A DNA stretch of 64,000 bases from Epithemia pelagica (lineage: Eukaryota > Protista > Bacillariophyta): the NCBI GenBank assembly GCA_946965045.2, contig OX337229.1, forward strand, positions 6,262,001-6,326,000, read 5' to 3'. Made by a program: the position numbers and the translations under genes. The notes under the pieces are model-generated. The model saw only the letters and a program-made list of their open reading frames with translations. It was not told the origin of the DNA and ran no database searches. Positions 23,471 to 51,808 of this stretch are shown piece after piece (positions within the stretch are counted from its first letter, which is position 1; every line of letters starts with the position of its first letter).

Positions 23471-23566
23471 CCCGCCCTTACTCATTGGTCATTGCTTGTT
23501 CCTTTTTCTATTCTCTTGCTGCTCTCATAATCTCTTGGAATCCTTTTTTAGTAAATCATCTTCATC

Positions 23567-24457
23567 ATGCCCAACGCGGAACAAACGGAAAAGATTGCTT
23601 CCGGTCAAGGTTTCTTGGCCGCCTTGGACCAATCGGGTGGGAGTACCCCCAAGGCCTTGGGCTTGTACGGTGTGACCGAAGACATGTTTACGCCCGACAC
23701 CATGTTTGATGTCATTCACGAAATGCGTACCCGCATCATGACAGCCAAGGGCTTTACCGGCGACCGTGTCTTGGGTGCCATTTTGTTTGAAAATACCATG
23801 GACCGGACCGTCGAGGGCAAGCCGAGTGCCGAATACTTGTGGGACGTCAAGCAAGTGGTGCCCTTTTTGAAATGCGACAAGGGCTTGCAAGAATTGGCCA
23901 ATGGCGTGCAACTCATGAAACCCATGCCGCATTTGGACGACTTGATGGAACGGGCCTCCAAGGCGGGCATTTTTGGCACCAAGATGCGCAGTGTCATTAA
24001 GGAAGCCAATGAAGAAGGCATCCAGGCCATTGTTGCGCAACAATTTGAAATTGGCAAGCAAATTTTGAGCCATGGATTGGTGCCCATCATTGAACCCGAA
24101 GTCGACATTAAAAGTCCCACCAAGCAAGAATGCGAAGACATTCTCAAGGCGGCCATTCTCAAGGAATTGGATGCCTTGGACGACGGCATTCAAGTCATGT
24201 TGAAATTGTCCTTGCCCAGCACGGTCAACTTTTACAAGGAATGCGTCGATCATCCCAAATGCCTCAAGGTCGTGGCCTTGTCGGGTGGTTATGCCCGGGA
24301 GGAGGCCAATGCCATTTTGGCCCAACAAACGGGCATGATTGGATCCTTTTCGCGAGCCTTGACGGAAGGTTTGACCAAGCAAATGTCGGATGACGACTTT
24401 GAAGCCACCTTGGACAAGACCATTCAAGGCATTTACGAAGCCTCCATTGCCGGTTAA
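23567..24457 (+). CDS. FBA: Class I fructose-1,6-bisphosphate aldolase, bacterial type, no targeting peptide (296 aa)
   Basis: GFLAALDQSGGSTPKAL, GAILFENTM, VPFLKCDKG, FGTKMRSVI, VPIIEPEVDI, VMLKLSLP, VVALSGGY, SFSRAL; strongly biased codon usage. Confidence 0.96.
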   Translation: MPNAEQTEKIASGQGFLAALDQSGGSTPKALGLYGVTEDMFTPDTMFDVIHEMRTRIMTAKGFTGDRVLGAILFENTMDRTVEGKPSAEYLWDVKQVVPFLKCDKGLQELANGVQLMKPMPHLDDLMERASKAGIFGTKMRSVIKEANEEGIQAIVAQQFEIGKQILSHGLVPIIEPEVDIKSPTKQECEDILKAAILKELDALDDGIQVMLKLSLPSTVNFYKECVDHPKCLKVVALSGGYAREEANAILAQQTGMIGSFSRALTEGLTKQMSDDDFEATLDKTIQGIYEASIAG

Positions 24458-24465
24458 GTGCTGGC

Positions 24466-24487
24466 GTGTGTGTGTGTGTGTGTGTGA
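24466..24487 (+). repeat. (TG)n microsatellite
   Basis: Direct reading just 3' of the aldolase stop codon. Confidence 0.9.
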
Positions 24488-26275: not shown

Positions 26276-29200
26276 TTGCAGTTTTTTTGTGAAATCGAGA
26301 AAATGGTGTCATCACCACTACTCCAACCACCACCACAACCTTTGAAGCGACGACGGCGGCAACCGCCGAGTACCAACCACAACCACAACAACAACCGGGG
26401 ACGACAAGAGGACCACCCATTGTGGTTTGAGTGCCAGAATCGAAACGACAACAACCACAAGAACCTCTGTACGAACCACTGGAATGGGTGGTGGTTCTGT
26501 TTCTTCCACAATCCAGACGACAAGTGTCCAGGGGGAATAGGACCTTGTCGTCGTCTGGAGGGTGACCGAGTTTGGAACAGCAACAAGAAGGGAATTCGAG
26601 CCGAAATGACAGGGAACACAACCAAAACAACGATACGAAGAAGGCGCAGTCGCAACCGCCATGAGACTCCACTCTACGGGCGGTTCGGTTTCGTTTGGCT
26701 CGTGGTATGGTTGTCGGTTCTGGGAACCGCTGCAGTTGCAGCAGTAACCACACACGACGAACCCCAACAAGCACAAGAAGAAGGACATGCGCAAGAACAA
26801 ACACGACAACGACGACTGGGTCGAGGAATGATGGGTGCCACACCTCCACCATCACCACCATTGTCTCCAACGACCCGACGGAGCAGCAGGAGGATTGGTT
26901 CTTCTTCTTCTTCTTCACCACCCGAGCTAGTACACTCGCAGCAAACTCAAACGCAACCACACAAAAAGCAACCACAACAACAACCACAAGGATACATTCG
27001 ACGTGCCAATCGAGCCCTCCGCGATTCGCAAAAGCCTCGACATGACGACAACGACACTAACGAGTCTACTACGACGACAACAACAACAACCACTCGACAC
27101 ACTCGGCGAAACTTGCGTTCGTCGTCGTCCTCCTCCTCTTTGTCTATTCCTAGGGCCAATAGCAACCACAAGAGTGACAAGAATCACGACCACAAGGTCC
27201 CGGAGCAACGGTCCACCAATATTCGTAGAAAAAGGAGGAAGAGTGACACCACCAATCATTCTCCTGCTGGTACCAACAACCACAACAATACCAGCAACAG
27301 TTCTGTCACGACAACCACCACCACAATACAACAACAACAACGAGCGTTGCGTCGTCCCTCGAACCGTCATGCGAATGCGGAACGAGTCCTTCTTACCACG
27401 AATACGACTCATCGCATTTACTTTGACGCGGTGCAGGTGCAAATCAATATGGTCTTGCCCATTGCCTGTACCGATGCGGGGGCGGCCACGGTTCGCAATG
27501 CGGCTCAGGTCGTGTTGCACACGGTACTTGTGGACACTGCGGCCAATGACACGAATACGACGACTTGTGAAACACAATGGAATCAATTGCAACTCGTCTT
27601 GTTTCCCAATGCCAGTAGTGCCACGACGACTACGACGACGACGAGGGATTGGACGCCGGTCGATTTGATTGTGGGAGTTCCTGGTACCTGTCTCAACAAC
27701 CAGAACGCCACCAGCAACATGTGGATTGAGTTGCCCGGAGGCGTCTTGGAATACGAAACCACTCGAGTAATACCTCTCGTCGTCAATGATTCTCTGGTGG
27801 AGGCACAAGCTTCGGCCTTGGTCCAAGACTGTGTGGAATCCATTTTGGGTTCGACCGCCATGGTCTCGGAATTGCAATCCAGTTATGCCTTTGTGTCGGG
27901 CGTCCAAGTGGTGCCCGACCCCACCCTGGCTCCTTCGGTACAACCATCGGCGGTCCCCACGGCATCCGTGGCGCCTTCCACGACAGCTCCCACAATCACA
28001 CCCACTACAGTTCCCACAATGACAGCTCCCACAACGGCAGTTCCCAGTCGTAGTCCCACAACTGCACCTATCACAGCCATACCCACGACCAGTAGGCCCA
28101 CAACGAGCGCACCCGTGTCGTCGCCATCGTTGGTACCCACAACATCACCAGTGGCCAGCACCAACGTGCCGTCGGAACGTCCGTCGGAACAACAAGCCTT
28201 GTTACAACCGTCTCCCACGGCCGCTCCTTCCCAGACTGCAGCAACCTCAACAACTGTTCCGACGAGTTCCTCCACAGTACCCCCGACGAATAACCGGCCA
28301 ACAACGACAATGCCCACGCCACAAGGTTCCAGTAGCAGTACCACCCAAATGCCAACTTCTGCACCAAGTAGTAGTACTACGACCACAACACCATCGTCGC
28401 CGAACGTACCCACGGCTCCACCCACACCAACACCATCCTTGGTGGTGGTCCCCAACGTACCCACTGCCTTACCCACCCAGCCATCTACCGGTACAGACTT
28501 TCCAAGCTTTTCAGCGACAAGAGGGAGTCCCTCTCCCACGGCGACCACTGCTGTACCAACCACAACACCCTCCAGTGTTCCGACCGTGATTCAAAATCTC
28601 CCTCCTTCGTCGGGAGGGACTGGTACTACTCCTACTACCCCTACAGTACCTCCATCGTCGTTGGGGATGACAAAGGCTCCGACCAACCTTCCATCCACGG
28701 TACCATCATCAGTTCCCTCACTGCATCCCGAACAGACACCGGTCGTGGTGGCACAGCAACAAGGCACGAACGACGACGATGAATTTGACGAACAAGTGGC
28801 CGTTTCGGATCGAACCAATGAGATTGCGGCTTCCAACAATGACAATGACAAAGATGGACGGTGGAGTCCCCGACGGTTAGCTCTTGTGGTGATTTGTGGA
28901 AGTATCCTTGTTTACTTGCTGCCCTTTACCGTGTCGCTCGTGTATGCGTCGGCTCGCACGCAGTATCAAAAGGCCAAGACGAAAAAAGAGGAGCAAGAAA
29001 AACAACAACAACAAATGCTACTTCTACAGGCTGGCAATGTCCGGTTGGATGATCAGGACGACTCGTCGTCGTCATCGTCTGGTACATCGTTGGTGGTCGA
29101 ACACTTGTTGCACAGAGATGATCGCCATGGACCGGATGGGGCGGCGGGGTCTAGTCTGGATACCAGTTACACTTATGAAAGTTTCCCTTCCATGGTCTCC

Positions 29201-32200
29201 TTGAGCGGCAATTCCAAAAAGAACGACGACGGCAAGACCAGACGAGGACGACGCCAAACGAAGAACAAGAAGCAATTTCCGCGTCAAGTGCAACGTGAAC
29301 AACAAGCTCAACAAGAAGGAGAGCGACCCGAGCAACGTCCCATGGCGGGTACTACCACCACGACAAGTCGTAGTATTCATTTCCATGCATCACCAACCGA
29401 CGAAAGGGACGACCGGTTCGAACTAGAGGAGGATGGTCAGACGGTCGAGTCGGTCACAATCCGACACAGCAACCGTGCTCTCGATCACGATCCTATGCAT
29501 GACTACTTTGATATTACCACCGACGAAGACGACGAAGATGTCATCGAAAGCGAGGAAAGTGAAGAGGAACAGTTTTACGATGAACTGATGGAACCCGCCC
29601 GACGGCATACCGTGGTACCCATAGGATTGGGAACCCTTCCCAACCGCACTCTGGAACGGAACCAGGATTCGCTACAAAGCAGCAGGAGAGCGCTTCAACC
29701 GGAGGAGCGAATGCAAAAAGCTCCTACGCACAATCCGCCGTTTCATCCCAAGCCCGAAGCAACGAAACCGTTGCGGTATGAGGAAAATAAAGATGCGGTG
29801 CTATACCAAAAAGCCAACGATTACCTTGGTAGACCTGCGGCTGGCTCTAAGGATGAGCTCGTCACCTCTAATACGAGTATGAGAGAAAAACAGCAGCTGC
29901 CTCTTCAAGAAGCAGGTCGACATGGCTATGCATTGGCAGCTCATGACAAGGATCAAATTGCTCTGGTGGAATCCGCAGAGTTTACAAGTCCCAGTGAGCA
30001 CGACATTTCAGATCGTACAGCAAATCACTCCATCGAGGCTTCCGAGTCCCCAATCAAGATGCGGTACCCTCAACGTCACAGCATTGGTGCGAGACCACCC
30101 GACGACGATGGGAAGATTCTCTTGGTAGACACAGTCATGATGCAGCCAAGTTATTTCGATGACAAGGACACGGAAAAGATGGAACCATTGACAACACCAG
30201 AAAGCGTCCCGCAACCAAGTTCACCATGGTTGGTGCAGTTGCAACGACGCCGACATAGCTGTGCTGGTAATCTGGAACAGCCGAAAACATCATCATCATC
30301 ATCTTCTTCTTCTTCTTCTCCTGGGGACAAAACTACCGAGGTCATGAAACAATCACCATTGGTTCCAGACAAACAAGCATCCATAGAAGAAGATGCAGAT
30401 GGTGCGGAGAGCATTGCCAGTATTCATCCGTTGGCTGCTGCTCAGGTAATTCCTGGGACGGAAACGAGTTGGGCGCATTTGTCCTTTGGGCAAATGTCGG
30501 CACATCCTTCGCCGCGATCCACTTCTTTGTTGAGATCACCCGATGACGATACAACGACAAGCAGCGCCAGCGATTGGATGTCACCGGCTTCCCCACATTT
30601 GTCGAGACAACAGTCTCCTCGCTCGAAACCGGATCAAGGTGCGGAGACAACTGAGGTAATTGTCTCTTCTCCGACTCAGCAAGTTCATGTCGAGAAGCGA
30701 TCCGTTGGCACTCTTACAAACCTTCTCCATCAAATATCAAAGAGGCAAATGGAAAATTATCCTCACATGGTTACTGCCCAAGAAGGCTCATCAGAAGGCT
30801 CTGCAAGTGACAGCAATAGCAGCGATACATCAAATCTCCACATCCACGTGGGCTCTGTTTCACTGAACGAGGATGGTGTGGAACATTCCGAGCCGGCATT
30901 GCGAGCATCTTTGCAACAAAACAATGAGATGCTGGTCTTACAGAGCAGTGAATCACAGAAGATGGACGAATCAGGCTCAGATTCCGATGAATCCCAGTCA
31001 CGGGGATATTTCATGGGTGTAGATCAAACTACATCAAAAGGACAGAAATCAGCGGACAAGGTAGACGACGCTGAAAGTATTGTTAGCATTGAGCCACCTA
31101 CAGTCACGGGTGCCACTCCCGGCACGGAAACCAGCTGGGCCCACCTCTCACTAGGGCAGCTAGGTTCTAAATCTCCACCAACCCCAACATCATCTTTGTT
31201 GGGCAATAAGACAGCACCTGGCGATGAAAGCCCACAAAGGAGCGCGAGCAGTTGGATCTCATCGGATTCCCCACAACAACGGTCTGTTCAAGGATCACTT
31301 CGTCCGGAGTTGGATGGAAACAGATCCGAGAGGCAAGCTGTCACATCGCTACGCCGAGGCACACAAAGACCGACCGGCAACCTGACGAACCTTCTTCGTG
31401 AATTATCGCTCAGAGATATGGAGAACAGCGGTAAAAACAGTCATCAAATCGCAATGGCAGCCCTTTCGCAAAATGTCAGCAACAGCAGTGACTCGACTGG
31501 TCTTCATATCGACCTTGCTTCTGTCTCTACGACGGATCATTCGGAACATCATGAATCGTTGTTACAAGCCACCTTGCAACAAAGTAACGACATGTTGATC
31601 TTACGAAGCGGTATCGACGAATCAAGCTCATTTGGGGAAAACTCTGTTGGTGAATCTGACTTTCTCCCTACCGATGAAAAAAGTGAGCTCTTACATCCAG
31701 GATCGTCAGCGTTAGATGTGGATCCGACTAGTTCCGTTAGATTCGAGGAGAGTACCCACTTGTCAAGTGGTATCAGCCCCCGTTCAGAACAGACAAGCAA
31801 TTATGCAACCGATTTATCGAACGCCCCGAATTCCAGAGATACGATGGTCGTTCTTGGTCAACCGTCGCCAAGGGAAATATCATCTCAAACTTACGACAGC
31901 TGCAGTGTAGATAGTCCCCTGGTTGATATCCATTCCGTCTCCTCGATGGATCAGTCTTCAGCGATGTCCCAAAGTTCGATGCCTCAAGACACTCACACAC
32001 GACGTTTGAACTACGAGCCTGTTGGTGATCCTATCATTTCAAGTAGCGACATGGATGGCACAGTGGCTGATACCACGGATTCCCCCTTGAAAAACGATGA
32101 TCTACCTCGCAATGATGAAGCCGACATCGCCATTACAGCATCACAGTCAAGTGGCCTCCAACCACGCATCGACGATACTTCGGCGGATGAAAAACTACGA

Positions 32201-44200: not shown

Positions 44201-47200
44201 ATGCCACCGTTTTTGGACAAGCTCAAGAAACGTACCGTGCCATCCAATGAAAAATCTGTGGCAACTTCTCCTATCGTTCCTGTACGGGATGACGATACCG
44301 CTGTTGCTACTTGTGTTGGTGATGGTGCTCTGTCGCAACGAGATGCTGGTAGTCCATCAAAGCCAACGAAACCAGAAGAGGAAAAGCAAAACGACGAGGA
44401 TTCAAAGCATCCAACTTGTTTGGCTCCCAAGGTGAAAACGAGGGACATGCCACCGTTTTTGGACAAGCTCAAGAAACGTACCGTGCCATCCAATGAAAAA
44501 TCTGTGGCAACTTCTCCTATCGTTCCTGTACGGGATGACGATACCGCTGTGGCTACTTGTGTTGGTGATGGTGCTCTGTCGCAACGAGATGCTGGTAGTC
44601 CATCAAAGCCAACGACACCAGAAGAGGAAAAGCAAAATGACGAGGATTCAAAGCATCCAACTAGTTTGGTTCCCAAGGTGAAAACGAGGGACATGCCACC
44701 GTTTTTGGACAAGCTCAAGAAACGTACCGTGCCATCCAATGAAAAATCTGTGGCAACTTCTCCTATCGTTCCTGTACGGGATGACGATACCGCTGTTGCT
44801 ACTTGTGTTGGTGATGGTGCTCTGTCGCAACGAGATGCTGGTAGTCCATCAAAGCCAACGACACCAGAAGAGGAAAAGCAAAACGACGAGGATTCAAAAC
44901 ATCCAACTAGTTTGGTTCCCAAGGTGAAAACGAGGGACATGCCACCGTTTTTGAACAAGCTCAAGAAACGTACTGGCAATGAAAAATCTGTGGCAACTTC
45001 TCCTATCGTTCCTGTACGGGATGACGATACCGATGTTGCTACTTGTGTTGGTGATGGTGCTCTGTCGCAACGAGATGCTGGTAGTCCATCAAAGCCAACG
45101 ACACCAGAACAGGAAAAGCAAAACGACGAGGATTCAAAGCATCCAACTAGTTTGGTTCCCAAGGTGAAAACGAGGGACATGCCACCGTTTTTGGACAAGC
45201 TCAAGAAACGTACCGTGCCATCCAATGAAAAATCTGTGGCTACTTCTCCTATCCTTCCTGTACGGGATGACGATACCGATGTTGCTACTCGTGTTGGTGA
45301 TGGTGCTCTGTCGCAACGAGATGCTGGTAGTCCATCAAAGCCAACGACACCAGAACAGGAAAAGCAAAATGACGAGGATTCAAAGCATCCAACTAGTTTG
45401 GTTCCCAAGGTGAAAACGAGGGACATGCCACCGTTTTTGGACAAGCTCAAGAAACGTACCGTGCCATCCAATGAAAAATCTGTGGCAACTTCTCCTATCG
45501 TTCCTGTACGGGATGACGATACCGATGTTGCTACTCGTGTTGGTGATGGTGCTCTGTCGCAACGAGATGCTGGTAGTCCATCAAAGCCAACGACACCAGA
45601 ACAGGAAAAGCAAAATGACGAGGATTCAAAGCATCCAACTAGTTTGGTTCCCAAGGTGAAAACGAGGGACATGCCACCGTTTTTGGACAAGCTCAAGAAA
45701 CGTACCGTGCCATCCAATGAAAAATCTGTGGCAACTTCTCCTATCGTTCCTGTACGGGATGACGATACCGATGTTGCTATTTGTGTTGGTGATGGTGCTC
45801 TGTCGCAACGAGATGCTGGTAGTCCATCAAAGCCAACGACACCAGAAGAGGAAAAGCAAAACGACGAGGATTCAAAGCATCCAACTAGTTTGGTTCCCAA
45901 GGTGAAAACGAGGGACATGCCACCGTTTTTGAACAAGCTCAAGAAACGTACCGTGCCATCCAATGAAAAATCTGTGGCAACTTCTCCTATCGTTCCTGTA
46001 CGGGATGACGATACCGATGTTGCTACTTGTGTTGGTTATGGTGCTCTGTCGCAACGAGATGCTGGTAGTCCATCAAAGCCAACGACACCAGAAGAGGAAA
46101 AGCAAAACGACGAGGATTCAAAGCATCCAACTAGTTTGGTTCCCAAGGTGAAAACGAGGGACATGCCACCGTTTTTGGACAAGCTCAAGAAACGTACCGT
46201 GCCATCCAATGAAAAATCTGTGGCAACTTCTCCTATCCTTCCTGTACGGGATGACGATACCGATGTTGCTACTCGTGTTGGTGATGGTGCTCTGTCGCAA
46301 CGAGATGCTGGTAGTCCATCAAAGCCAACGACACCAGAACAGGAAAAGCAAAATGACGAGGATTCAAAGCGTCCAACTAGTTTGGTTCCCAAGGTGAAAA
46401 CGAGGGACATGCCACCGTTTTTGGACAAGCTCAAGAAACGTACCGTGCCATCCAATGAAAAATCTGTGGCAACTTCTCCTATCGTTCCTGTACGGGATGA
46501 CGATACCGATGTTGCTATTTGTGTTGGTGATGGTGCTCTGTCGCAACGAGATGCTGGTAGTCCATCAAAGCCAACGACACCAGAAGAGGAAAAGCAAAAC
46601 GACGAGGATTCAAAGCATCCAACTAGTTTGGTTCCCAAGGTGAAAACGAGGGACATGCCACCGTTTTTGGACAAGCTCAAGAAACGTACTGGCAATGAAA
46701 AATCTGTGGCAACTTCTCCTATCCTTCCTGTACGGGATAACGATACCGATGTTGCTACTCGTGTTGGTGATGGTGCTCTGTCGCAACGAGATGCTGGTAG
46801 TCCATCAAAGCCAACGACACCAGAACAGGAAAAGCAAAATGACGAGGATTCAAAGCATCCAACTAGTTTGGTTCCCAAGGTGAAAACGAGGGACATGCCA
46901 CCGTTTTTGGACAAGCTCAAGAAACGTACCGTGCCATCCAATGAAAAATCTGTGGCTACTTCTCCTATCGTTCCTGTACGGGATGACGATACCGATGTTG
47001 CTACTCGTGTTGGTGATGGTGCTCTGTCGCAACGAGATGCTGGTAGTCCATCAAAGCCATCGACACCAGAAGAGGAAAAGCAAAACGACGAGGATTCAAA
47101 GCATCCAACTACTAGTTTGGTTCCCAAGGTGAAAACGAGGGACATGCCACCGTTTTTGGACAAGCTCAAGAAACGTACCGTGCCATCCAATGAAAAATCT

Positions 47201-50200
47201 GTGGCAACTTCTCCTATCCTTCCTGTACGGGATAACGATACCGATGTTGCTACTCGTGTTGGTAATGGTGCTCTGTCGCAACGAGATGCTGGTAGTCCAT
47301 CAAAGCCAACGACACCAGAACAGGAAAAGCAAAATGACGAGGATTCAAAGCATCCAACTAGTTTGGTTCCCAAGGTGAAAACGACGGACATGCCACCGTT
47401 TTTGGACAAGCTCAAGAAACGTACCGTGCCATCCAATGAAAAATCTGTGGCAACTTCTCCTATCGTTCCTGTACGGGATGACGATACCGATGTTGCTATT
47501 TGTGTTGGTGATGGTGCTCTGTCGCAACGAGATGCTGGTAGTCCATCAAAGCCAACGACACCAGAAGAGGAAAAGCAAAACGACGAGGATTCAAAGCGTC
47601 CAACTAGTTTGGTTCCCAAGGTGAAAACGAGGGACATGCCACCGTTCTTGGACAAGCTCAAGAAACGTACCGTGCCATCCAATGAAAAATGTGTGGCTAC
47701 TTCTCCTATCGTTCCTGTATGGGATGACGATACCGATGTTGCTACTCGTGTTAATGATGGTGCTCTGTCGCAACGAGATGCTGGTAGTCCATCAAAGCCA
47801 ACGACACCAGAACAGGAAAAGCAAAACGACGAGGATTCAAAGCATCCGACTAGTTTGGTTCCCAAGGTGAAAACGAGGGACATGCCACCGTTTTTGGACA
47901 AGCTCAAGAAACGTACCGTGCCATCCAATGAAAAATCTGTGGCTACTTCTCCTATCGTTCCTGTACGGGATGACGATACCGATGTTGCTACTCGTGTTGG
48001 TGATGGTGCTCTGTCGCAACGAGATGCTGGTAGTCCATCAAAGCCATCGACACCAGAAGAGGAAAAGCAAAACGACGAGGATTCAAAGCATCCAACTACT
48101 AGTTTGGTTCCCAAGGTGAAAACGAGGGACATGCCACCGTTTTTGGACAAGCTCAAGAAACGTACCGTGCCATCCAATGAAAAATCTGTGGCAACTTCTC
48201 CTATCGTTCCTGTACGGGATGACGATACCGCTGTTGCTACTTGTGTTGGTGATGGTGCTCTGTCGCAACGAGATGCTGGTAGTCCATCAAAGCCAACGAC
48301 ACCAGAACAGGAAAAGCAAAACGACGAGGATTCAAAGCATCCAACTAGTTTGGTTCCCAAGGTGAAAACGAGGGACATGCCACCGTTTTTGGACAAGCTC
48401 AAGAAACGTACCGTGCCATCCAATGAAAAATCTGTGGCAACTTCTCCTATCGTTCCTGTACGGGATGACGATACCGCTGTTGCTACTTGTGTTGGTGATG
48501 GTGCTCTGTCGCAACGAGATGCTGGTAGTCCATCAAAGCCAACGACACCAGAACAGGAAAAGCAAAACGACGAGGATTCAAAGCATCCAACTAGTTTGGT
48601 TCCCAAGGTGAAAACGAGGGACATGCCACCGTTTTTGGACAAGCTCAAGAAACGTACCGTGCCATCCAATGAAAAATCTGTGGCAACTTCTCCTATCGTT
48701 CCTGTACGGGATGACGATACCGATGTTGCTACTCGTGTTGGTGATGGTGCTCTGTCGCAACGAGATGCTGGTAGTCCATCAAAGCCAACGACACCAGAAC
48801 AGGAAAAGCAAAACGACGAGGATTCAAAGCATCCAACTAGTTTGGTTCCCAAGGTGAAAACGAGGGACATGCCACCGTTTTTGGACAAGCTCAAGAAACG
48901 TACTGGCAATGAAAAATCTGTGGCAACTTCTCCTATCGTTCCTGTACGGGATGACGATACCGATGTTGCTACTCGTGTTGGTGATGGTGCTCTGTCGCAA
49001 CGAGATGCTGGTAGTCCATCAAAGCCAACGACACCAGAACAGGAAAAGCAAAATGACGAGAATTCAAAGCATCCAACTAGTTTGGTTCCCAAGGTGAAAA
49101 CGAGGGACATGCCACCGTTTTTGGACAAGCTCAAGAAACGTACCGTGCCATCCAATGAAAAATCTGTGGCAACTTCTCCTATCGTCCGTGCAGAGCATGG
49201 CGGTACTCCATGGAATGTGTCTGAAACTAAACCTGTGGACGGTTTCTGTGTTTTGTCCGATGAATTGAAGTCTGAATCAACCGTGATCGATGCAATTGAT
49301 CGAAATCCAATTTTCGCTTGTTCCCAAAGAAACAGCTTACATGAAAGTTTTAGTGAGCATACGTTCGAGGTTCGAGAAGATGGCCAGTTGCTCTCATTCA
49401 TTGATTTATCAATTTCAGATGGCGGCGATGAATCAAAACGAGACAATAGAGTCGTGGATATGAGTTCCCGAAGGAACTCGATTACTTCTGTTGCTTCACT
49501 CGGTGATCCGACAAGGCTTGATGAGAGATTTGTTAGTGTTGTCGCTTTAGATGATCTTGAACCCGATAATGGCTCCAAGACCAGTGAAAATGAGTCTGCG
49601 ACCTTTTTAAAACAGCCGCCTCAATCGGATGACGAGAATTCGTTCAGCGAGGAAGAGATTATGGAATGTGAAGAAGAAGCGGTGCTGCGAACAGCTGGAG
49701 TGGAAGTGTTACCCCTTTGTCATGGCCATGACTCTTTTGTTGAGGAAGAGATATCGGAGACTGAGGAAGAACGTTTAATTTCAGAATTCAATGGAAATGA
49801 GTCTTTTATCGAAGAAGAAATATGTGAACTTGACGATGGTTTCAAACCACCAGGGTTCAATGGGAATGAATCCTTTATTGAAGAAGAGATTTCTGAGACG
49901 GACGATGTTGTGTCGCCAAGAACGCACCTTCCGGTTAGTCCTGAAACCCCGTTGTCAGAGACTGCTACATCTCTTGACATGTGGGACCAAGTGAAAGAAC
50001 TTGATCTTGATTGCTCGTCAGAGTCACTGGAAGACCAATCGGTATCTATGGATTCTGTTGAAACAGAGACATCTGAGGAGGATATGTTTGAAGAAGTTAT
50101 TGAAGAAGAGGTGTTGGATGATGAGGGCAGTTTCTTCAAGTCGCCATCAAAAGCTACAGAAAAGAAGCAACTGATGTTACTTTCGCCCATTTCTGAAGTA

Positions 50201-51808
50201 ACCTCTGATGACAGCGTTGAAGCGACACCCAAAGGAATAATTCAAAAAACAAGGGTGCAAGCCGAAGCTTCTGTTGCTCCCATACCAGTATGTGAAATGA
50301 GTGAAAGTCTTCAAAAAGACGTTTCATCATTACCATCAGCTTTTCCTGAAGTCGCGGCCTTGGTACCTCACAGGTTCGATTCTGATATGGCGACTTTCGT
50401 TGTGAGAAAACCATATGGCGCTGAGACTGACCAAAGTATTTGGTTCGAGAACGGGGAACTTGGGGCTAAAGTTTACCAGCAACATGCATCAGTACACAAT
50501 GTGAACACTATCGAGGTTGTTGCACAAATTCATGTCGATGGGTCCAAATTTCTACTTCATGGGCATGGTTCAATTCGTCACGGTAGTTCAGACGGAGTGT
50601 GGCGTGATTACTCTGGCCAACAGCCATATGGTGACGATCTGAACGAACTGGGCTATGTGTCATGCGTCGACAAAGATGGAAACGACAGCACATATTCTCT
50701 TGATGAACTGTATGAACGTGCTCTATCGATTCGTGAACGTTATTGCAACTCGCTGCTTTTGGCGGCAAGAGAACTTTCGGAAAAGGAAGAAAACTCAATG
50801 GACCCAAGTAAGGAAAACCTGCCATCAATGGACTATTCTCAGCAAGAGCCTTTTTCAGGTAATGAAACTTCCGAACACGACGCGGCACACACCGAACCGT
50901 TTTGTGAGTTGGACGATAACGAGGAGAGACGAAATGCCGATGACGCCGTCGACCTTGCGATGCCAATCGATCAACCCAAGTTGGTTGAAGATTTGGCTCC
51001 CATGTCTACATCCATGAAATCAGCCATCAAACAATTGGAGCATCTTCTTTCTATGAGAGACGCCAAAGTGCTGGCTTCAAAGAATCCCTCGGGAGGGTCA
51101 GCTCATTTGTTACATGATGTCCCAGCTGGAGACGATGCCGTTGGTACAGAGGGGCTTGTGGATATTAGCACTGCAGGAGAATCCTCCCTGTCTGACAGCG
51201 ACACCCATGTGTCAGCCAGTCTTGTACAAAATCAATCGCAAGGATCACCTCAAGTTTCGCTTGCAGTTGTAGAACAGTTGCCACCAGTATCGCCATCCAT
51301 GAAAGCCTCGATGATGCAGTTGTCGCAGCTTCTTCGTGACCGTCATCTGGATGGTTTTCACGCTATGGCTGCGGCATTTGACCCACCAACTGAACAGGAT
51401 ACACACACTGCTTTGGATTCTCTTGAGGGATCTCATGTCGAAAATGAGATAGGAGGATTGGACGAAGAACCTAGCAATGTTCAAAACACGCCACAGATCC
51501 AGAATGTACCAATCCCGAGCACTTCACCAATGCCATCTTTGATTGACAAATGGCACAAGTTCTCCAAGTCGGGTGACGTACGTGGAGTCGATGGCGCAAC
51601 CTTAGCTGGAACGAAAGCTGGAGATTTGGCTTCCCCGCAGGAAGGGACCAAATCTATGGCATCTGACTCTATTGTACAAGGGAGTTCTTCGACCAATGAT
51701 CCCGTGGATTGTGAAATGGAGGGAAACCCATCCACATGCCTGAATGGAGATGCAATATCTGATGTTATGGAACATGTCACTGGCGAAGGAGAATCACCCA
51801 GTGTCTAA
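26276..51808 (+). CDS. Giant intron-free predicted single-pass membrane protein (ORF 8,510 aa; about 8,400 aa from ATG 26606)
   Basis: 25.5 kb without an in-frame stop. Signal-like segment after M at 26606 (RRRR...FGFVWLVVWLSVLGTAAVAA), a roughly 190-aa globular region, a P/T/S-rich stalk, one hydrophobic helix followed by basic residues, then a very long acidic repetitive tail. Confidence 0.85.
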   Translation: MQFFCEIEKMVSSPLLQPPPQPLKRRRRQPPSTNHNHNNNRGRQEDHPLWFECQNRNDNNHKNLCTNHWNGWWFCFFHNPDDKCPGGIGPCRRLEGDRVWNSNKKGIRAEMTGNTTKTTIRRRRSRNRHETPLYGRFGFVWLVVWLSVLGTAAVAAVTTHDEPQQAQEEGHAQEQTRQRRLGRGMMGATPPPSPPLSPTTRRSSRRIGSSSSSSPPELVHSQQTQTQPHKKQPQQQPQGYIRRANRALRDSQKPRHDDNDTNESTTTTTTTTTRHTRRNLRSSSSSSSLSIPRANSNHKSDKNHDHKVPEQRSTNIRRKRRKSDTTNHSPAGTNNHNNTSNSSVTTTTTTIQQQQRALRRPSNRHANAERVLLTTNTTHRIYFDAVQVQINMVLPIACTDAGAATVRNAAQVVLHTVLVDTAANDTNTTTCETQWNQLQLVLFPNASSATTTTTTTRDWTPVDLIVGVPGTCLNNQNATSNMWIELPGGVLEYETTRVIPLVVNDSLVEAQASALVQDCVESILGSTAMVSELQSSYAFVSGVQVVPDPTLAPSVQPSAVPTASVAPSTTAPTITPTTVPTMTAPTTAVPSRSPTTAPITAIPTTSRPTTSAPVSSPSLVPTTSPVASTNVPSERPSEQQALLQPSPTAAPSQTAATSTTVPTSSSTVPPTNNRPTTTMPTPQGSSSSTTQMPTSAPSSSTTTTTPSSPNVPTAPPTPTPSLVVVPNVPTALPTQPSTGTDFPSFSATRGSPSPTATTAVPTTTPSSVPTVIQNLPPSSGGTGTTPTTPTVPPSSLGMTKAPTNLPSTVPSSVPSLHPEQTPVVVAQQQGTNDDDEFDEQVAVSDRTNEIAASNNDNDKDGRWSPRRLALVVICGSILVYLLPFTVSLVYASARTQYQKAKTKKEEQEKQQQQMLLLQAGNVRLDDQDDSSSSSSGTSLVVEHLLHRDDRHGPDGAAGSSLDTSYTYESFPSMVSLSGNSKKNDDGKTRRGRRQTKNKKQFPRQVQREQQAQQEGERPEQRPMAGTTTTTSRSIHFHASPTDERDDRFELEEDGQTVESVTIRHSNRALDHDPMHDYFDITTDEDDEDVIESEESEEEQFYDELMEPARRHTVVPIGLGTLPNRTLERNQDSLQSSRRALQPEERMQKAPTHNPPFHPKPEATKPLRYEENKDAVLYQKANDYLGRPAAGSKDELVTSNTSMREKQQLPLQEAGRHGYALAAHDKDQIALVESAEFTSPSEHDISDRTANHSIEASESPIKMRYPQRHSIGARPPDDDGKILLVDTVMMQPSYFDDKDTEKMEPLTTPESVPQPSSPWLVQLQRRRHSCAGNLEQPKTSSSSSSSSSSPGDKTTEVMKQSPLVPDKQASIEEDADGAESIASIHPLAAAQVIPGTETSWAHLSFGQMSAHPSPRSTSLLRSPDDDTTTSSASDWMSPASPHLSRQQSPRSKPDQGAETTEVIVSSPTQQVHVEKRSVGTLTNLLHQISKRQMENYPHMVTAQEGSSEGSASDSNSSDTSNLHIHVGSVSLNEDGVEHSEPALRASLQQNNEMLVLQSSESQKMDESGSDSDESQSRGYFMGVDQTTSKGQKSADKVDDAESIVSIEPPTVTGATPGTETSWAHLSLGQLGSKSPPTPTSSLLGNKTAPGDESPQRSASSWISSDSPQQRSVQGSLRPELDGNRSERQAVTSLRRGTQRPTGNLTNLLRELSLRDMENSGKNSHQIAMAALSQNVSNSSDSTGLHIDLASVSTTDHSEHHESLLQATLQQSNDMLILRSGIDESSSFGENSVGESDFLPTDEKSELLHPGSSALDVDPTSSVRFEESTHLSSGISPRSEQTSNYATDLSNAPNSRDTMVVLGQPSPREISSQTYDSCSVDSPLVDIHSVSSMDQSSAMSQSSMPQDTHTRRLNYEPVGDPIISSSDMDGTVADTTDSPLKNDDLPRNDEADIAITASQSSGLQPRIDDTSADEKLRLEEQKSLVLGKTLKDAKSLDNNHKDICETNVVLDDPISDGSERRHSHDGMSSQHSPEKPIHYWQRPYARSMEHMLITDQEMEQVDGSLSHTNSDSPYHMTLIPQTSHDLSEIAQDNEQLLSEKDRANPSSVLHESSVPNASSEQDTFSLSVCGDETADGDHQQPLVVYESAPPQTSPLESRTDQVVDSDNDNIDDEYRCGQTELKFFEEEPPFARQKEGAVAFDDVSTNETADGDHLPPLGVSESAPPTQTSPLESRTDQRGDSDNFNDSIDVEYKRGQTELKLHEEEPVALFDDFTKQVDERVHDIDEQRGFENNTEKANFLSEMVLESNAMAILDEMLDSDAKGGTCDSPSLSEDDHNAFGDELSNSKPSGDTESPVEFAESPETIIAYSDHQQEDENDGNISVPQSLCAALLSPVAMEKTSGNQHHHEDKEEDLVVNEENENQILNISRDSLNEMSAQHSPEHPIKYWQRPYARSMEDGVVPDHGTEEDDRFWSTSSNESTGLPDMERGPETGEHLLNSSLNDKVHQPVDQNANSKPNKAVIDFMNSENEPTDDVGAFQHSSPSLDSGNSSSSPVVAYKTSHDETDPENIEHGMLHMNQTLTLSNTQASLHDGPQHLREKSEGQDAINSTSQLQDEEQKKGTIVNDSRSPMPYPEDIAINSSLDSQHHRQHEDKQMQGARQEIDSSTTTSGVVSIQDSQTTSVSEPSQNDYPEKDTSQAFSLLFPKPSLMHSDSSSMHPDTWDDNGESNVMVPLKPLSSSAEDNETSAEPNDREESSEASFVPLDDMSIRASNKKDNNPPNARAPLSPQVLPARDSESFDTSDGESQSIETSFVPLDDLSVRPSSMDDRNEPNQQIALLSPIFPTAQHTDSMAEKDAGTQSSETSFVPLDDMSVRPCSSENTFHQEVMEPTLQPSSASQDTMASVEVEEKSQSSEPLNESEGKGQSSDTSFVPLDDSFMLAETEGNKFEPNLMTRLSPVGNEALAETEAKGQSSDTSFVPLDDSSMLADTEASKFDPNAIVPTSPPVSSYGEIEYMTHTDEPGESNDVYPIPWGNSVSDENDEQVLDKDWNEAGHVATDDEEEVVKVIEVDDVNPSISSFASSSLSTWNDGDSNEVSSQKNDASNHNSGTWHSPRSSAPSSLGHSNNSDNSSYDTPVDSDPIPNTSSSFMDCFNVLGKLGGHTPSEGSGSSSSSFEGSSSSSSNSTVSHHKNDTMTDDDVEDPPLDMSLESLSEPNLNGSLTPSVLSETARTIDERERAEHNKTTASTEQLEDPSLHRNSLCSGGASVASSSQEFSGSSQHPRATENDSYADTVSFDDGVSSTTTMELLQGEAIFLPSPLPSTNKQDGKNDDRGVSPLAHSLVMARKAANAARGNAAHGGEGSSSLPTSDDEQDKTDINQNLKGASSTSASSLSFSMSSIWTGGYLSYSSGSTRRFAMDLPLPDSDHDSYNAGDDAGDQDLTFLSTPKPRYDRGDVRDDWSDSGLGYVSPSGLSLAASTTNSELFAVSVADEEAASAPASPAIEHVVPQSRLKQDAPASSVGNLFAFPVADEETASTPAFPAVEQAVPQPRPKQDAPASSIRNLKMDQRNSNNDENEHGEWPQVSERNIIGDALSPQAPTSLQLDSLHLLDQQERPQPKQEQPSVEDKKFLPEAPLNSSSHAHPPAASTDEEDDDPLVVSSFSSDYSGSDQEEDVQDDANVNIPDQNASTPPGSTNPVATIDQTPSFNDDQQQKGETQLDQASTAVAAPSSPTANRQEAKVCPLDVFDAMGGASEKLTMPLSPESDPESESPRHWMEAEDMDASIQQWYHHESISDVSSAIQQALQAQERKNDDNNYEAFQANESDSFIEEEVLDEEDVTEEEILEEVIEDHQAEDDVLEEVIVEEHAEGEEILEEEIIEELVSSSFLDMGSFIEEVILEEDEAEVLNELADTVISPLKQDEKTKEPLSPVRESQGLENLAPVSPQMGASIQRWENQFVDKVQEEIHDPVAADVGSMLDNETRKDMVSDTPGNNLVEDMRQEKDLDTALESAPSVESMSNTELPLSPVSEPNAMVDLAPISPQMNSVLRQWENRFADNAEAQIQDHANAEASRARTETETVMDSYTLEEDLMEDEMEHDDELDGVLESITASIESYQALEIPLSPVSEPEEMMDLAPISPQMNSVIQQWENRFAKNDEDDTHHADDDDEAIESRSAGSSVMEEDLEDDDEFEAISRSMEPTDDLAQPESPIADPEGMLELTPMSRETSALIEDWDNLRQQQTQLATSDAPGGLGQEEEPLTDTADASSRSIESYESVTASQTSLAESEGLMDLAPISSQMNNSIQLWESFVADNSQEINFDHSSPAVEVPPDDVENDMASIPADMSSQTSLSESEGLMDLAPISSQMNNSIQHWESFIAGNSQEINFDITSPTVEVPHDDVENDMASIPADMSSQTSLSESEGLMDLAPISSQMNNSIQHWESFVADNSQEINFDHSSPAVEVPPDDVENDMASIPADMSSQTSLSESEGLMDLAPISSQMNNSIQHWESFIAGNSQEINFDHTSPAVEVPHDDVENDTVSIPADMSSQTSLSESEGLMDLAPISSQMNNSIQHWESFIADNSQEINFDNTSPTVDKSRPEEKNHAETKSQSAAANEEVGKNELEDINSSMETNESLAQPTSPASEPESLVDHNPGSSEIDAAIRRWENRFAEDATWDDGKIVGEKTKVMKQSPESDQDPRDETFLDGPELSSAARSIPHEFEYESVRFVVRRPYGAEMDQALWFENGQLGAKVYQQHASAHSVETIEILGLRDADGSKFVLYGHDTIRHGTQDGVWSKSSDNHIKLENKEEEQHDAKNPTPPLDEHYQRAISIRIKYCTTLLSAATKMSPTDAYSPIQPDVGSDKDDSAKKAVSVMSDVTDQKRKSRMSTLMAPADEKQNDGNSKHPTSLVPKVKTRDMPPFLDKLKKRTVPSNEKSVATSPIVPVRDDDTDVATRVGNGALSQRDAGSPSKPTTPEQEKQNDEDSKHPTSLVPKVKTRDMPPFLDKLKKRTVPSNEKSVATSPIVPVRDDDTDVATRVGDGALSQRDAGSPSKPTTPEEEKQNDEDSKHPTSLVPKVKTRDMPPFLDKLKKRTVPSNEKSVATSPIVPVRDDDTDVATRVGDGALSQRDAGSPSKPTTPEQEKQNDEDSKHPTSLVPKVKTRDMPPFLDKLKKRTVPSNEKSVATSPIVPVRDDDTDVATRVGDGALSQRDAGSPSKPTTPEQEKQNDEDSKRPTSLVPKVKTRDMPPFLDKLKKRTVPSNEKSVATSPIVPVRDDDTDVATRVGDGALSQRDAGSPSKPTTPEQEKQNDEDSKRPTSLVPKVKTRDMPPFLDKLKKRTGNEKSVATSPIVPVRDNDTDVAICVGDGALSQRDAGSPSKPTTPEQEKQNDEDSKHPTSLVPKVKTRDMPPFLDKLKKRTVPSNEKSVATSPIVPVRDDDTDVATRVGDGALSQRDAGSPSKPTTPEQEKQNDEDSKRPTSLVPKVKTRDMPPFLDKLKKRTVPSNEKSVATSPIVPVRDDDTDVATRVGDGALSQRDAGSPSKPTTPEQEKQNDEDSKRPTSLVPKVKTRDMPPFLDKLKKRTGNEKSVATSPIVPVRDNDTDVATRVGDGALSQRDAGSPSKPTTPEQEKQNDEDSKRPTSLVPKVKTRDMPPFLDKLKKRTGNEKSVATSPIVPVRDDDTDVAICVGDGALSQRDAGSPSKPTTPEQEKQNDEDSKHPTSLVPKVKTRDMPPFLDKLKKRTVPSNEKSVATSPIVPVRDDDTDVATRVGDGALSQRDAGSPSKPTTPEQEKQNDEDSKRPTSLVPKVKTRDMPPFLDKLKKRTVPSNEKSVATSPIVPVRDDDTDVAICVGDGALSQRDAGSPSKPTTPEQEKQNDEDSKRPTSLVPKVKTRDMPPFLDKLKKRTGNEKSVATSPILPVRDDDTDVATRVGYGALSQRDAGSPSKPTTPEQEKQNDEDSKRPTSLVPKVKTRDMPPFLDKLKKRTVPSNEKSVATSPIVPVRDDDTAVATCVGDGALSQRDAGSPSKPTKPEEEKQNDEDSKHPTCLAPKVKTRDMPPFLDKLKKRTVPSNEKSVATSPIVPVRDDDTAVATCVGDGALSQRDAGSPSKPTTPEEEKQNDEDSKHPTSLVPKVKTRDMPPFLDKLKKRTVPSNEKSVATSPIVPVRDDDTAVATCVGDGALSQRDAGSPSKPTTPEEEKQNDEDSKHPTSLVPKVKTRDMPPFLNKLKKRTGNEKSVATSPIVPVRDDDTDVATCVGDGALSQRDAGSPSKPTTPEQEKQNDEDSKHPTSLVPKVKTRDMPPFLDKLKKRTVPSNEKSVATSPILPVRDDDTDVATRVGDGALSQRDAGSPSKPTTPEQEKQNDEDSKHPTSLVPKVKTRDMPPFLDKLKKRTVPSNEKSVATSPIVPVRDDDTDVATRVGDGALSQRDAGSPSKPTTPEQEKQNDEDSKHPTSLVPKVKTRDMPPFLDKLKKRTVPSNEKSVATSPIVPVRDDDTDVAICVGDGALSQRDAGSPSKPTTPEEEKQNDEDSKHPTSLVPKVKTRDMPPFLNKLKKRTVPSNEKSVATSPIVPVRDDDTDVATCVGYGALSQRDAGSPSKPTTPEEEKQNDEDSKHPTSLVPKVKTRDMPPFLDKLKKRTVPSNEKSVATSPILPVRDDDTDVATRVGDGALSQRDAGSPSKPTTPEQEKQNDEDSKRPTSLVPKVKTRDMPPFLDKLKKRTVPSNEKSVATSPIVPVRDDDTDVAICVGDGALSQRDAGSPSKPTTPEEEKQNDEDSKHPTSLVPKVKTRDMPPFLDKLKKRTGNEKSVATSPILPVRDNDTDVATRVGDGALSQRDAGSPSKPTTPEQEKQNDEDSKHPTSLVPKVKTRDMPPFLDKLKKRTVPSNEKSVATSPIVPVRDDDTDVATRVGDGALSQRDAGSPSKPSTPEEEKQNDEDSKHPTTSLVPKVKTRDMPPFLDKLKKRTVPSNEKSVATSPILPVRDNDTDVATRVGNGALSQRDAGSPSKPTTPEQEKQNDEDSKHPTSLVPKVKTTDMPPFLDKLKKRTVPSNEKSVATSPIVPVRDDDTDVAICVGDGALSQRDAGSPSKPTTPEEEKQNDEDSKRPTSLVPKVKTRDMPPFLDKLKKRTVPSNEKCVATSPIVPVWDDDTDVATRVNDGALSQRDAGSPSKPTTPEQEKQNDEDSKHPTSLVPKVKTRDMPPFLDKLKKRTVPSNEKSVATSPIVPVRDDDTDVATRVGDGALSQRDAGSPSKPSTPEEEKQNDEDSKHPTTSLVPKVKTRDMPPFLDKLKKRTVPSNEKSVATSPIVPVRDDDTAVATCVGDGALSQRDAGSPSKPTTPEQEKQNDEDSKHPTSLVPKVKTRDMPPFLDKLKKRTVPSNEKSVATSPIVPVRDDDTAVATCVGDGALSQRDAGSPSKPTTPEQEKQNDEDSKHPTSLVPKVKTRDMPPFLDKLKKRTVPSNEKSVATSPIVPVRDDDTDVATRVGDGALSQRDAGSPSKPTTPEQEKQNDEDSKHPTSLVPKVKTRDMPPFLDKLKKRTGNEKSVATSPIVPVRDDDTDVATRVGDGALSQRDAGSPSKPTTPEQEKQNDENSKHPTSLVPKVKTRDMPPFLDKLKKRTVPSNEKSVATSPIVRAEHGGTPWNVSETKPVDGFCVLSDELKSESTVIDAIDRNPIFACSQRNSLHESFSEHTFEVREDGQLLSFIDLSISDGGDESKRDNRVVDMSSRRNSITSVASLGDPTRLDERFVSVVALDDLEPDNGSKTSENESATFLKQPPQSDDENSFSEEEIMECEEEAVLRTAGVEVLPLCHGHDSFVEEEISETEEERLISEFNGNESFIEEEICELDDGFKPPGFNGNESFIEEEISETDDVVSPRTHLPVSPETPLSETATSLDMWDQVKELDLDCSSESLEDQSVSMDSVETETSEEDMFEEVIEEEVLDDEGSFFKSPSKATEKKQLMLLSPISEVTSDDSVEATPKGIIQKTRVQAEASVAPIPVCEMSESLQKDVSSLPSAFPEVAALVPHRFDSDMATFVVRKPYGAETDQSIWFENGELGAKVYQQHASVHNVNTIEVVAQIHVDGSKFLLHGHGSIRHGSSDGVWRDYSGQQPYGDDLNELGYVSCVDKDGNDSTYSLDELYERALSIRERYCNSLLLAARELSEKEENSMDPSKENLPSMDYSQQEPFSGNETSEHDAAHTEPFCELDDNEERRNADDAVDLAMPIDQPKLVEDLAPMSTSMKSAIKQLEHLLSMRDAKVLASKNPSGGSAHLLHDVPAGDDAVGTEGLVDISTAGESSLSDSDTHVSASLVQNQSQGSPQVSLAVVEQLPPVSPSMKASMMQLSQLLRDRHLDGFHAMAAAFDPPTEQDTHTALDSLEGSHVENEIGGLDEEPSNVQNTPQIQNVPIPSTSPMPSLIDKWHKFSKSGDVRGVDGATLAGTKAGDLASPQEGTKSMASDSIVQGSSSTNDPVDCEMEGNPSTCLNGDAISDVMEHVTGEGESPSV
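27920..28740 (+). repeat. Mucin-like PT/PS-rich coding region (predicted extracellular stalk)
   Basis: Dense PTxxP repeats in the translation. Confidence 0.8.
28877..28948 (+). other. Predicted transmembrane helix of the giant protein
   Basis: LALVVICGSILVYLLPFTVSLVYA followed by RTQYQKAKTKK (positive-inside pattern). Confidence 0.75.
39105..40055 (+). repeat. Coding tandem repeat, 201-bp (67-aa) unit, about 4.7 copies
   Basis: ATGGACCT(G/T)GC (MDLAPISSQMNNSIQHWESF) at 39140, 39341, 39542, 39743 and 39944. Confidence 0.93.
40427..40816 (+). other. Unknown globular domain, copy 1 (FVVRRPYGAE...WFENGQLGAKVYQQH)
   Basis: Clear protein similarity to 50369-50776; the two copies flank the big array. 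Confidence 0.75.
40960..49186 (+). repeat. Coding tandem array, 246-bp (82-aa) unit, about 33.5 copies
   Basis: 34 occurrences of the NEKSVATSP position (41073 to 49155); spacings are 246 bp, with seven of 240 bp and two of 249 bp. Confidence 0.97.
50369..50776 (+). other. Unknown globular domain, copy 2 (FVVRKPYGAE...WFENGELGAKVYQQH)
   Basis: Aligns with copy 1 through GSKF.L.GH..IRHG..DGVW and LDE.Y.RA.SIR..YC..LL.AA. Confidence 0.75.

Follow-up and report, generated by a model that had tools for sequence, protein, structure and literature searches.

A giant predicted membrane protein of the diatom Epithemia pelagica carries two copies of an undescribed, diatom-wide domain

Animal transmembrane mucins carry a SEA domain and have short tails, and the apicomplexan adhesins TRAP/MIC2 combine vWA/TSR ectodomains with tails of ~45 aa that end in a conserved Trp, with a separate large connector. 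In Plasmodium falciparum, the protein Pf332 has a small N-terminal folded domain, one transmembrane segment and huge acidic repeats on the cytosolic side, composed of Glu-rich degenerate units. The CAA-domain adhesive-trail proteins of the diatom C. australis (Trailins) have been described as lacking a membrane anchor. For gliding raphid diatoms, the adhesion-motility-complex model calls for an unbroken connection through the plasma membrane; it is depicted as a ‘transmembrane complex’, the existence of which is still open (PMC11420354, PMC13056149). Here we analysed a 64,000-nucleotide stretch of the Epithemia pelagica genome (GenBank assembly GCA_946965045.2, contig OX337229.1, positions 6,262,001 to 6,326,000, forward strand; hereafter the window, numbered from its first letter), in which one open reading frame (ORF; 26276-51808, +) would encode a giant membrane protein with a mucin-like outer part and a very long acidic tail. 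At ~926 kDa, the product would be one of the largest algal membrane proteins known to us, and a literature search returned no paper describing it. The firmest new result concerns a ~140-aa domain that occurs twice in the giant protein and defines a family with a confidently modelled fold, a polo-box-like look and, as a rule, a C-terminal membrane anchor, which gives a concrete partner hypothesis for the giant. The locus as a whole is best explained, with a confidence somewhat short of even, as a real, lineage-restricted membrane glycoprotein whose disordered tail acts as a multivalent scaffold or tether.

The ORF listing gives the single 25.5-kb frame exactly as it had been reported in the first-pass annotation, a reading of the letters of the window alone (Table 1). 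An in-frame TAG lies directly upstream of it (26273-26275), and the first ATG, at nt 26303 in an A-rich context, is the probable start codon, yielding a product of 8,501 aa. Analysis in 3-kb bins revealed no stop codon in frame 1 in any bin, against 11-87 stops per bin in the other two forward frames, and GC1 exceeds GC2 along the ORF, as it does in the neighbouring TYW1-like gene. Internal duplicates within the ORF have diverged to 27-45% identity with the frame still open. Allele data came from four runs of one study, representing three samples, which were compared with positions 25801-31800 of the window; the longest records of these runs measure 443-509 kb and look like genomic contigs of the same organism. 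Two allelic indels were found, each of 3 nt, and the 40 listed allelic single-nucleotide polymorphisms (SNPs) comprise 14 synonymous and 26 non-synonymous changes and no stop. Together, the absence of stops, the old in-frame duplicates and the restriction of allelic indels to 3 nt argue that the ORF is one real, maintained gene. The surviving frame and the short cores conserved in old duplicates are the best available evidence of selection on the tail as protein.

Reported ‘joints’ were considered as introns and rejected, since their sides are 20-23 nt long and lie in A/C-rich low-complexity sequence. Contig ctg1245l of ENA assembly ERZ21939226 carries the locus with 0 mismatches to the window over 22.6 kb, and being identical lends it no independent support. 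The public automatic gene call at the locus (noted at window 27883-28667) is a protein of 7,713 aa that begins at aa 798 of the ORF. It omits the leader, the ectodomain and most of the stalk, because a 226-aa antisense ORF was called over the 5’ part.

Table 1 Coordinates of the giant ORF, its parts and its neighbours in the window, with one family member encoded elsewhere in the same assembly
Feature	Position	Strand	Properties
Whole ORF	26276..51808	+	8,510 codons plus stop, 25.5 kb, single open frame (ORF listing)
N-terminal segment, 126 aa	26303..26680	+	pI 10.8, 5 Cys, several Trp/His
Hydrophobic segment 1 (aa 136-160)	26681..26755	+	Kyte-Doolittle maximum 2.26
Basic Arg/Ser/Thr-rich stretch (aa 161-394)	26756..27457	+	pI 11.7, K+R 15.8%
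Putative knob (aa 395-590, 196 aa)	27458..28045	+	4 Cys, 5 N-x-S/T sequons, 29% hydrophobic
P/T/S/A mucin-like stalk (aa 591-863, 273 aa)	28046..28864	+	P 18.3%, T 20.9%, S 16.5%
Hydrophobic segment 2 (aa 864-893), predicted transmembrane helix before tail	28865..28954	+	Kyte-Doolittle maximum 2.48
Tail (aa 894-8510, 7,617 aa)	28955..51805	+	pI 4.6, net charge -604, S 12.7%, D+E 18.4%
Duplicated ~220-aa module (aa 1375-1801)	30398..31678	+	43-44% identity; T-E-T-S-W-A-H-L in each copy
Five ~55-aa repeats	34406..35380	+	30-36% identity, identical S-F-V-P-L-D-D core
About ten repeats, 67-100 aa	37973..40294	+	Core D-L-A-P-I-S-P-Q-M-N-x-x-I-x-x-W-E-N
Polo-box-like domain (tentative), copy 1	40421..40825	+	64% identity to copy 2 over 80 aa
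Tandem array, 246-nt (82-aa) unit	40950..49185	+	33.6 copies, 96% identity
Very acidic stretch	49187..50362	+	D+E 24.5%, three S-F-[IV]-E-E-E-I motifs
Polo-box-like domain (tentative), copy 2	50363..50785	+	Closest copy to family consensus
Acidic C-terminal 340 aa	50786..51805	+	Two or three degenerate L-A-P-x-S...M copies; no hydrophobic segment
284-aa ORF	16891-17745	+	PT disordered-repeat match, E 4e-14
876-aa ORF, TYW1-like	17964-20594	-	Radical_SAM + Wyosine_form; weak N-terminal TPR/HAT-like matches
296-aa ORF	23567-24457	+	Matches only the N-terminal half of the class-I fructose-bisphosphate aldolase profile (positions 10-193 of 349)
Kelch-repeat protein	59204-60418	-	Adjoins ORF 60757-61704 (+)
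ORF	60757-61704	+	C-terminal end matches start of DDE_Tnp_4 (Harbinger-type) transposase domain
P0002, 840-aa tail-anchored family member	contig ctg1228l		Same assembly as window

The last 871 aa of the ORF were compared with 1.84 billion representative sequences by exhaustive phmmer search, which returned 166 clusters with E-values from 2.9e-42 to 1e-3. The best stretches all fall within query positions 231-610, a part of the query that centres on domain copy 2, with the domain core at ~383-540. Judged by these matches, the ~140-aa domain defines an undescribed family that is diatom-wide and not raphid-specific, with named members in Pseudo-nitzschia multistriata (VEU43224.1), Nitzschia sp. 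Nitz4 and the centric Thalassiosira profunda (KAL9180491.1), and further members among MMETSP transcripts. Proteins of the family range from 300 to 1,250 aa. A hydrophobic region of 45-55 aa lies no more than 60 aa from the C-terminus, ~60-100 aa after the domain, in 122 of the 150 members listed; in a smaller group the domain is followed by a transmembrane segment and a long C-terminal extension. The closest members begin with a Pro-rich part containing conserved short motifs, a coiled coil and the string R-R-R-x-P-T-P-H-P-K. Then comes the domain, which a linker rich in Pro separates from a hydrophobic hairpin in two parts, and the protein closes with a conserved N-x-P-G-I. Pfam gave no match on ten full-length family members, no NCBIfam model matches the family, a full-length family profile searched against the PDB returned coiled-coil noise only, and a literature search found no paper describing the family or the domain. 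In the giant protein the two copies stand on opposite sides of the 82-aa array. Copy 2 retains the family invariants R-x-P, Y, L, R and Y, while copy 1 is more diverged and has lost the conserved L-G...Y hairpin residues.

A model of the domain was computed by AlphaFold from a 72-sequence alignment, giving a beta-sheet with two short inserted helices and a closing 33-residue C-terminal helix (pLDDT 94.2, pTM 0.87). The best PDB rows in a Foldseek search were Plk1 polo-box domains, although these matches are weak (E 0.05, TM-score ~0.2). An independent comparison by VIA-align against 48,161 representative chains placed polo boxes in all of the top eight rows (Plk4 CPB and PB3, Plk1, Plk2, Cdc5, ZYG-1 and KKT3), with 77-92 of 159 residues aligned at Z 5.0-6.6, a range below 8 in which a match can reflect a common arrangement; unrelated folds appeared from Z 4.7. 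A fold search of the Atlas reached a TM-score of at most 0.43. Searching the domain profile against the PDB revealed no related sequence and one marginal match to an uncharacterised protein (E 0.021), and no kinase domain was found by Pfam anywhere in the giant ORF. The modelled fold is tentatively described as polo-box-like, and the domain is not filed as a polo box.

The tail-anchored member P0002 has a counterpart, P0001, in another assembly (ERZ25042306). A PMSR gene, 78% identical between the two loci, lies downstream of both, and the upstream genes differ; P0001 is taken as the orthologue of P0002 in a related species. Maximum-likelihood analysis of 72 domain sequences gave the tree (P0003,(P0001,(P0002,(copy2,copy1)))), with supports of 97/86, 97/78 and 97/95, and a word-indexed search with P0003 recovered only P0003 itself and P0028. 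Copy 2 is 53% identical to P0002 (E 2e-48) and copy 1 44% (E 3e-33), the latter on a branch of length 0.7. The tree suggests that the domain of the giant was copied from the P0002 lineage after the split from the species carrying P0001, and was then duplicated within the gene. The claim is kept at the strength of a suggestion because support for the node uniting P0002 with the giant falls just short of the stricter threshold and the giant branches are long. Apart from the domain, the giant has nothing in common with the family members: it has two domain copies and a predicted N-terminal membrane anchor, with no hydrophobic segment after either copy, whereas most listed family members have a hydrophobic region near the C-terminus.

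A Kyte-Doolittle scan of the whole ORF located only two hydrophobic segments, at aa 136-160 and aa 864-893. The first had been described in the first-pass annotation as a signal-like N-terminus. It lies 126 residues past ATG 26303 (25 residues past ATG 26606) and has a core of ~21 residues, and on these grounds it looks more like a signal-anchor or first transmembrane segment (TM1) than a signal peptide of the classic, cleaved type. Only with a start at ATG 26606 would it be the h-region of a long signal peptide. Six Arg flank segment 1 on the N side and acidic residues on the C side, and a Lys-rich flank directly follows segment 2; under the positive-inside rule, this distribution would place the N-terminus inside, aa 161-863 on the exoplasmic side and the C-terminus inside. 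The protein may thus be a two-pass hairpin (N-in, C-in) instead of a strict type I protein, which weakens the earlier single-pass description and leaves intact its one transmembrane helix directly before the giant tail. The tail would be cytosolic whichever status segment 1 has, and the N-terminal 126 aa are predicted to be cytosolic if the start is at 26303. All three listed allelic SNPs in 26303-26680 are non-synonymous, including a Cys-to-Arg change, so that constraint there is weak or the stretch is a 5’ leader; they raise the question whether translation starts at 26303 or at ATG 26606.

Between the two segments, the composition bears out both the Arg-rich region proposed after the leader and the P/T-rich, mucin-like stalk (Table 1). 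The basic stretch contains multibasic sites and runs of poly-Ser and poly-Thr, and RxL occurs in it five times against 1.2 expected (P=0.003). The small globular domain proposed between them survives by composition only, as a 4-Cys, sequon-bearing knob, since its single-sequence AlphaFold (AF2) model was unusable (pLDDT 37.5). This layout invites comparison with proteins of the silica-deposition vesicle. Like the SAPs, which have a hydrophobic leader, RxL, Ser-rich runs, one transmembrane segment and a cytoplasmic part (PMC5647440), the giant could reside in the silicalemma as a protein of the SAP/silicanin kind, with the RxL/Ser-rich part luminal and clipped, and the tail tying the vesicle to structures of the cytoplasm while the wall forms. 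The enrichment of RxL and the poly-Ser runs are consistent with such a role. We nevertheless consider it quite unlikely: the RxL enrichment is partly due to an Arg-rich composition with few Leu, the region is Arg-rich and not Lys-rich and has no K-x-x-K clusters, the leader is atypical, the likeness is compositional only with no sequence similarity to any family, and SAP tails are short with a conserved 28-aa segment.

The enormous acidic tail with several repeat families was described correctly at first pass, and at least seven such families build it. Most of it is low in hydrophobic residues, and no hydrophobic segment occurs past aa 893. Besides the repeats listed in Table 1, it contains two pairs, one of 52 aa with Y-W-Q-R-P-Y-A and one of 64 aa with 72% identity. 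In the L-A-P-I-S-P-Q-M repeats, an acidic SP-rich lead-in is followed by an amphipathic helix-like stretch, and the final 4.7 copies form a young 201-nt tandem array (39107-40056). The 82-aa unit is a P/D/K/T/V/S polyampholyte of net charge ~0, and a degenerate additional copy begins near 40830. The 96% identity between its copies indicates that the array expanded recently, and the variable sites among them (7 synonymous, 16 non-synonymous) are near neutral, as expected of a recent expansion. An older event shows in the alignment of aa 4397-4965 to aa 7759-8309 (27% identity, E 5e-40), by which an entire ‘motif array plus domain’ block of the tail was duplicated long ago; the very acidic stretch before domain copy 2 (49187..50362) is paralogous to the stretch preceding copy 1.

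Of the 32 complete array units, 23 are 82 aa long, seven are 80 aa (with T-G-N-E-K for T-V-P-S-N-E-K) and two are 83 aa. Certain variants (H/R, T-R/I-C, Q/E) are linked and reappear in blocks, a hint of multi-unit duplications. Antisense ORFs of 629-1,180 aa lie within the array at 40843-44001, 44074-45963 and 46036-49578 (-), and are most likely an artefact of the stop-free repeat unit and not genes. The tail motifs were also considered as IQ or FFAT motifs; both readings failed on inspection, as the spacing does not fit.

The S-F-V-P-L-D-D core of the ~55-aa repeats resembles an LC3-interacting region (LIR) or Atg8-interacting motif (AIM), with F-x-x-L behind a Ser/acidic run. The pattern [DEST]x3-[WFY]-x-x-[LIV] has eight matches in the tail, seven of them in aa 894-4715, where shuffled sequences gave 1.4 (P=0.0005), although the copies are not independent and derive from ~three origins. 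The cores S-F-V-P-L and S-W-A-H-L are unchanged within repeats that have diverged to 30-44% identity. In known ER-phagy receptors, a membrane anchor occurs together with a LIR and a long region of disorder, and the giant could by analogy be a membrane-anchored ATG8-binding scaffold or selective-autophagy receptor that bridges a membrane or cargo to the phagophore. The number of matches and the constancy of their cores in diverged repeats would agree with this role. It is nonetheless highly improbable, being a match of short motifs only, with statistics inflated by the shared origins of the copies, and it leaves the 82-aa array, the polo-box-like domains and the mucin ectodomain unexplained.

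Searches with the rest of the protein returned no relatives. The Pfam search took in all sequence outside the array, cut into five pieces, together with four repeat units, and gave nothing above threshold; matches to CART, DUF1398 and ACT on the array proved to be summed weak repeats with no significant stretch. At E<=10, Pfam gave no family for one 82-aa unit, both domain copies or the putative knob, and across the Pfam runs (E<=1-10) it found no WH2, thymosin, SEA, vWA, polo box or myosin/actin-related domain in the giant. NCBIfam gave no match. Word-indexed protein searches with the whole protein region 380-900 and with the knob alone, in two length windows, revealed no relatives, and neither did a scan of JGI metagenomes with the knob or a metagenome scan with an alignment of the L-A-P-I-S-P-Q-M motif. 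Feature searches of the ESM Atlas gave sub-threshold rows only, among which the similarity of the knob to an unnamed diatom cluster (0.90) is a lead only. On these searches, the giant protein looks lineage-restricted.

We propose the following arrangement. A cytosolic N-terminus would be followed by TM1, ~700 aa outside the cell or in a vesicle lumen, a second transmembrane segment and the 7,617-aa cytosolic tail. The exoplasmic part would comprise the multibasic/RxL stretch, possibly clipped, a Cys-bonded and N-glycosylated knob and an O-glycosylated P/T/S stalk. The acidic, Ser-rich tail, which grew through repeated rounds of tandem duplication with its frame kept open, would be largely disordered and could extend into the cytoplasm over a distance of tens to hundreds of nanometres. 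Its motif arrays (5 LIR-like, ~10-13 L-A-P-I-S-P-Q-M...W and ~34 82-aa units) may recruit many copies of few partners. The two polo-box-like domains could form a pair, or each could bind a tail-anchored paralogue that sits on a different membrane, and the membrane of the giant would thereby be tied to another membrane or to a cortical structure.

Several points weigh against this arrangement. Pairing of the domains with the tail-anchored paralogues is pure conjecture, and the likeness to polo boxes is itself weak, given Z below 8, the Foldseek TM-score and the lack of a Pfam POLO_box match on the domain copies (E<=10) or the family members. The LIR-like and amphipathic-helix readings are pattern matches whose counts are inflated by repeat copies. 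The lineage restriction is open to the objection that giant orthologues could have been missed by phmmer and by the limited length windows of the ectodomain searches; the protein’s own 7,713-aa public product is not among the phmmer clusters, and very long proteins may be absent from the library or hidden in it. None of the four runs that contain the stretch is recorded as RNA, and the copy number of the array comes from one assembly only. The allelic SNPs amount roughly to weak purifying selection (pN/pS ~0.6 by our own estimate), and this value, together with the 7:16 ratio among the array copies, would also fit a gene of little function that drifts fast.

These last observations would fit a locus of little or no function, such as a young gene with runaway repeat expansion, an array inflated by assembly, or neighbouring coding units that lie in one frame by chance; the ratio of 14 synonymous to 26 non-synonymous SNPs and the failure to find homologues outside one domain point the same way. 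However, 8,510 codons are free of stops across non-repetitive sequence as well, duplicates at 27-45% identity remain in frame with conserved motif cores, and allelic indels in three samples are multiples of three. Separate genes sharing one stop-free frame over 25 kb are very unlikely. We therefore rate a locus of little function as rather improbable, and retain the multivalent scaffold or tether as the tentative explanation.

A more specific form of this explanation, which we regard as unlikely, is a long-range tether that joins one membrane to another or to the cortex. The N-terminal anchor would sit in the plasma membrane or a secretory vesicle, the tail, with a contour length of about a micrometre, would dock through its domains on tail-anchored paralogues, and the 34-unit array would act as an entropic spring. 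If this were true and the docking partner lay at the raphe cortex, the giant would be an elastic transmembrane element of the gliding machinery.

In the first-pass annotation, the protein had been proposed as a connector between adhesive and actin-myosin, or as a cortical spacer or scaffold, on the premise that the transmembrane connector of gliding remains unidentified; on that premise the literature agrees (PMC11420354, PMC13056149). In its full form, the proposal makes the giant the transmembrane connector of the raphid adhesion-motility complex, with an ectodomain that holds or forms adhesive strands in the raphe and a tail that, perhaps acting elastically, couples to the actin or myosin associated with the raphe. 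Topology and scale fit. Davutoglu et al. infer mechanical compliance in the gliding machinery, a property that the 2,700-aa polyampholyte array, rich in P/D/K/V, could have. The L-K-K-R-T string in the 82-aa unit also recalls the LKKT motif of WH2/thymosin proteins. However, no actin- or myosin-binding family was found, no WH2 or thymosin match appears in Pfam at E<=10, and phmmer finds no PDB chain for the 82-aa unit at E<=10. By eye, the L-K-K is preceded by D-M-P-P-F-L-D-K, ~8 residues with two prolines, where WH2 needs a three-turn helix. The array, at 96% identity between copies, is recent, and the tree suggests that the domain, too, entered the gene recently.

The distribution of the conserved domain, which the first-pass annotation had offered as a comparison between raphid and non-motile diatoms, also went against the proposal: the sole conserved domain occurs in the centric, non-gliding Thalassiosira profunda. 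A universal gliding connector is expected to be conserved among raphids, and the apparent lineage restriction of the giant argues against such a universal role; neither the ectodomain nor the tail gave an orthologue that could be recognised, even though the searched library, in which long proteins may be missed, contains proteins of Pseudo-nitzschia and Nitzschia. The architecture and the idea of a spacer or scaffold thus stand, while a specific link of the giant to actin, myosin or gliding has no specific support, and we consider the connector very unlikely. The giant is a legitimate but unsupported candidate for the gliding link, because its topology is right, and it is an equally good one for other roles.

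Elsewhere in the window lie the neighbouring features given in Table 1. The aldolase-half ORF could be a split gene or a pseudogene. A longer antisense ORF (23525-24556, -) overlaps it.

Compared with known systems, the giant resembles each in part. With CaFAP1/Trailins and transmembrane mucins it has in common, by prediction, an O-glycosylated P/T/S-rich part and a small Cys module; it differs from them in that Pfam finds no SEA, CAA, GDPH or vWA domain and in that 90% of the protein would be cytosolic. As a membrane protein with an outer part proposed to be adhesive and an acidic cytosolic tail proposed to couple to actomyosin, it recalls TRAP/MIC2 with the glideosome-associated connector, but the giant has neither the conserved terminal Trp, the short tail nor the vWA/TSR domains of the TRAP proteins. 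A tether of the KASH/nesprin type, in which a C-terminal transmembrane segment and a short luminal KASH peptide come after a giant cytosolic part, was considered and rejected, as neither hydrophobic segment lies beyond aa 893 and the protein has a hydrophilic C-terminus. SAPs and Silicanin-1 present leader, RxL, Ser-rich part, single transmembrane segment and cytoplasmic part in the order predicted for the giant (PMC5647440), whereas SAPs are small with a short tail, the tail of the giant has 7,617 aa, and no similarity was detected. The domain, as modelled, follows the polo boxes of Plk1/Plk2 (PBD), Plk4 (cryptic polo box/PB3), ZYG-1, Cdc5 and the kinetoplastid KKT3 in having a beta-sheet and then a helix; it stands in the giant as separate single copies and not as a PB1-PB2 pair, with no kinase domain and no sequence similarity to polo boxes. 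In overall layout, the giant is analogous to Pf332, whose sequence is unrelated and which has no mucin stalk: in both, a small N-terminal part and a membrane-spanning segment lead into a huge, acidic, repeat-built cytosolic region.

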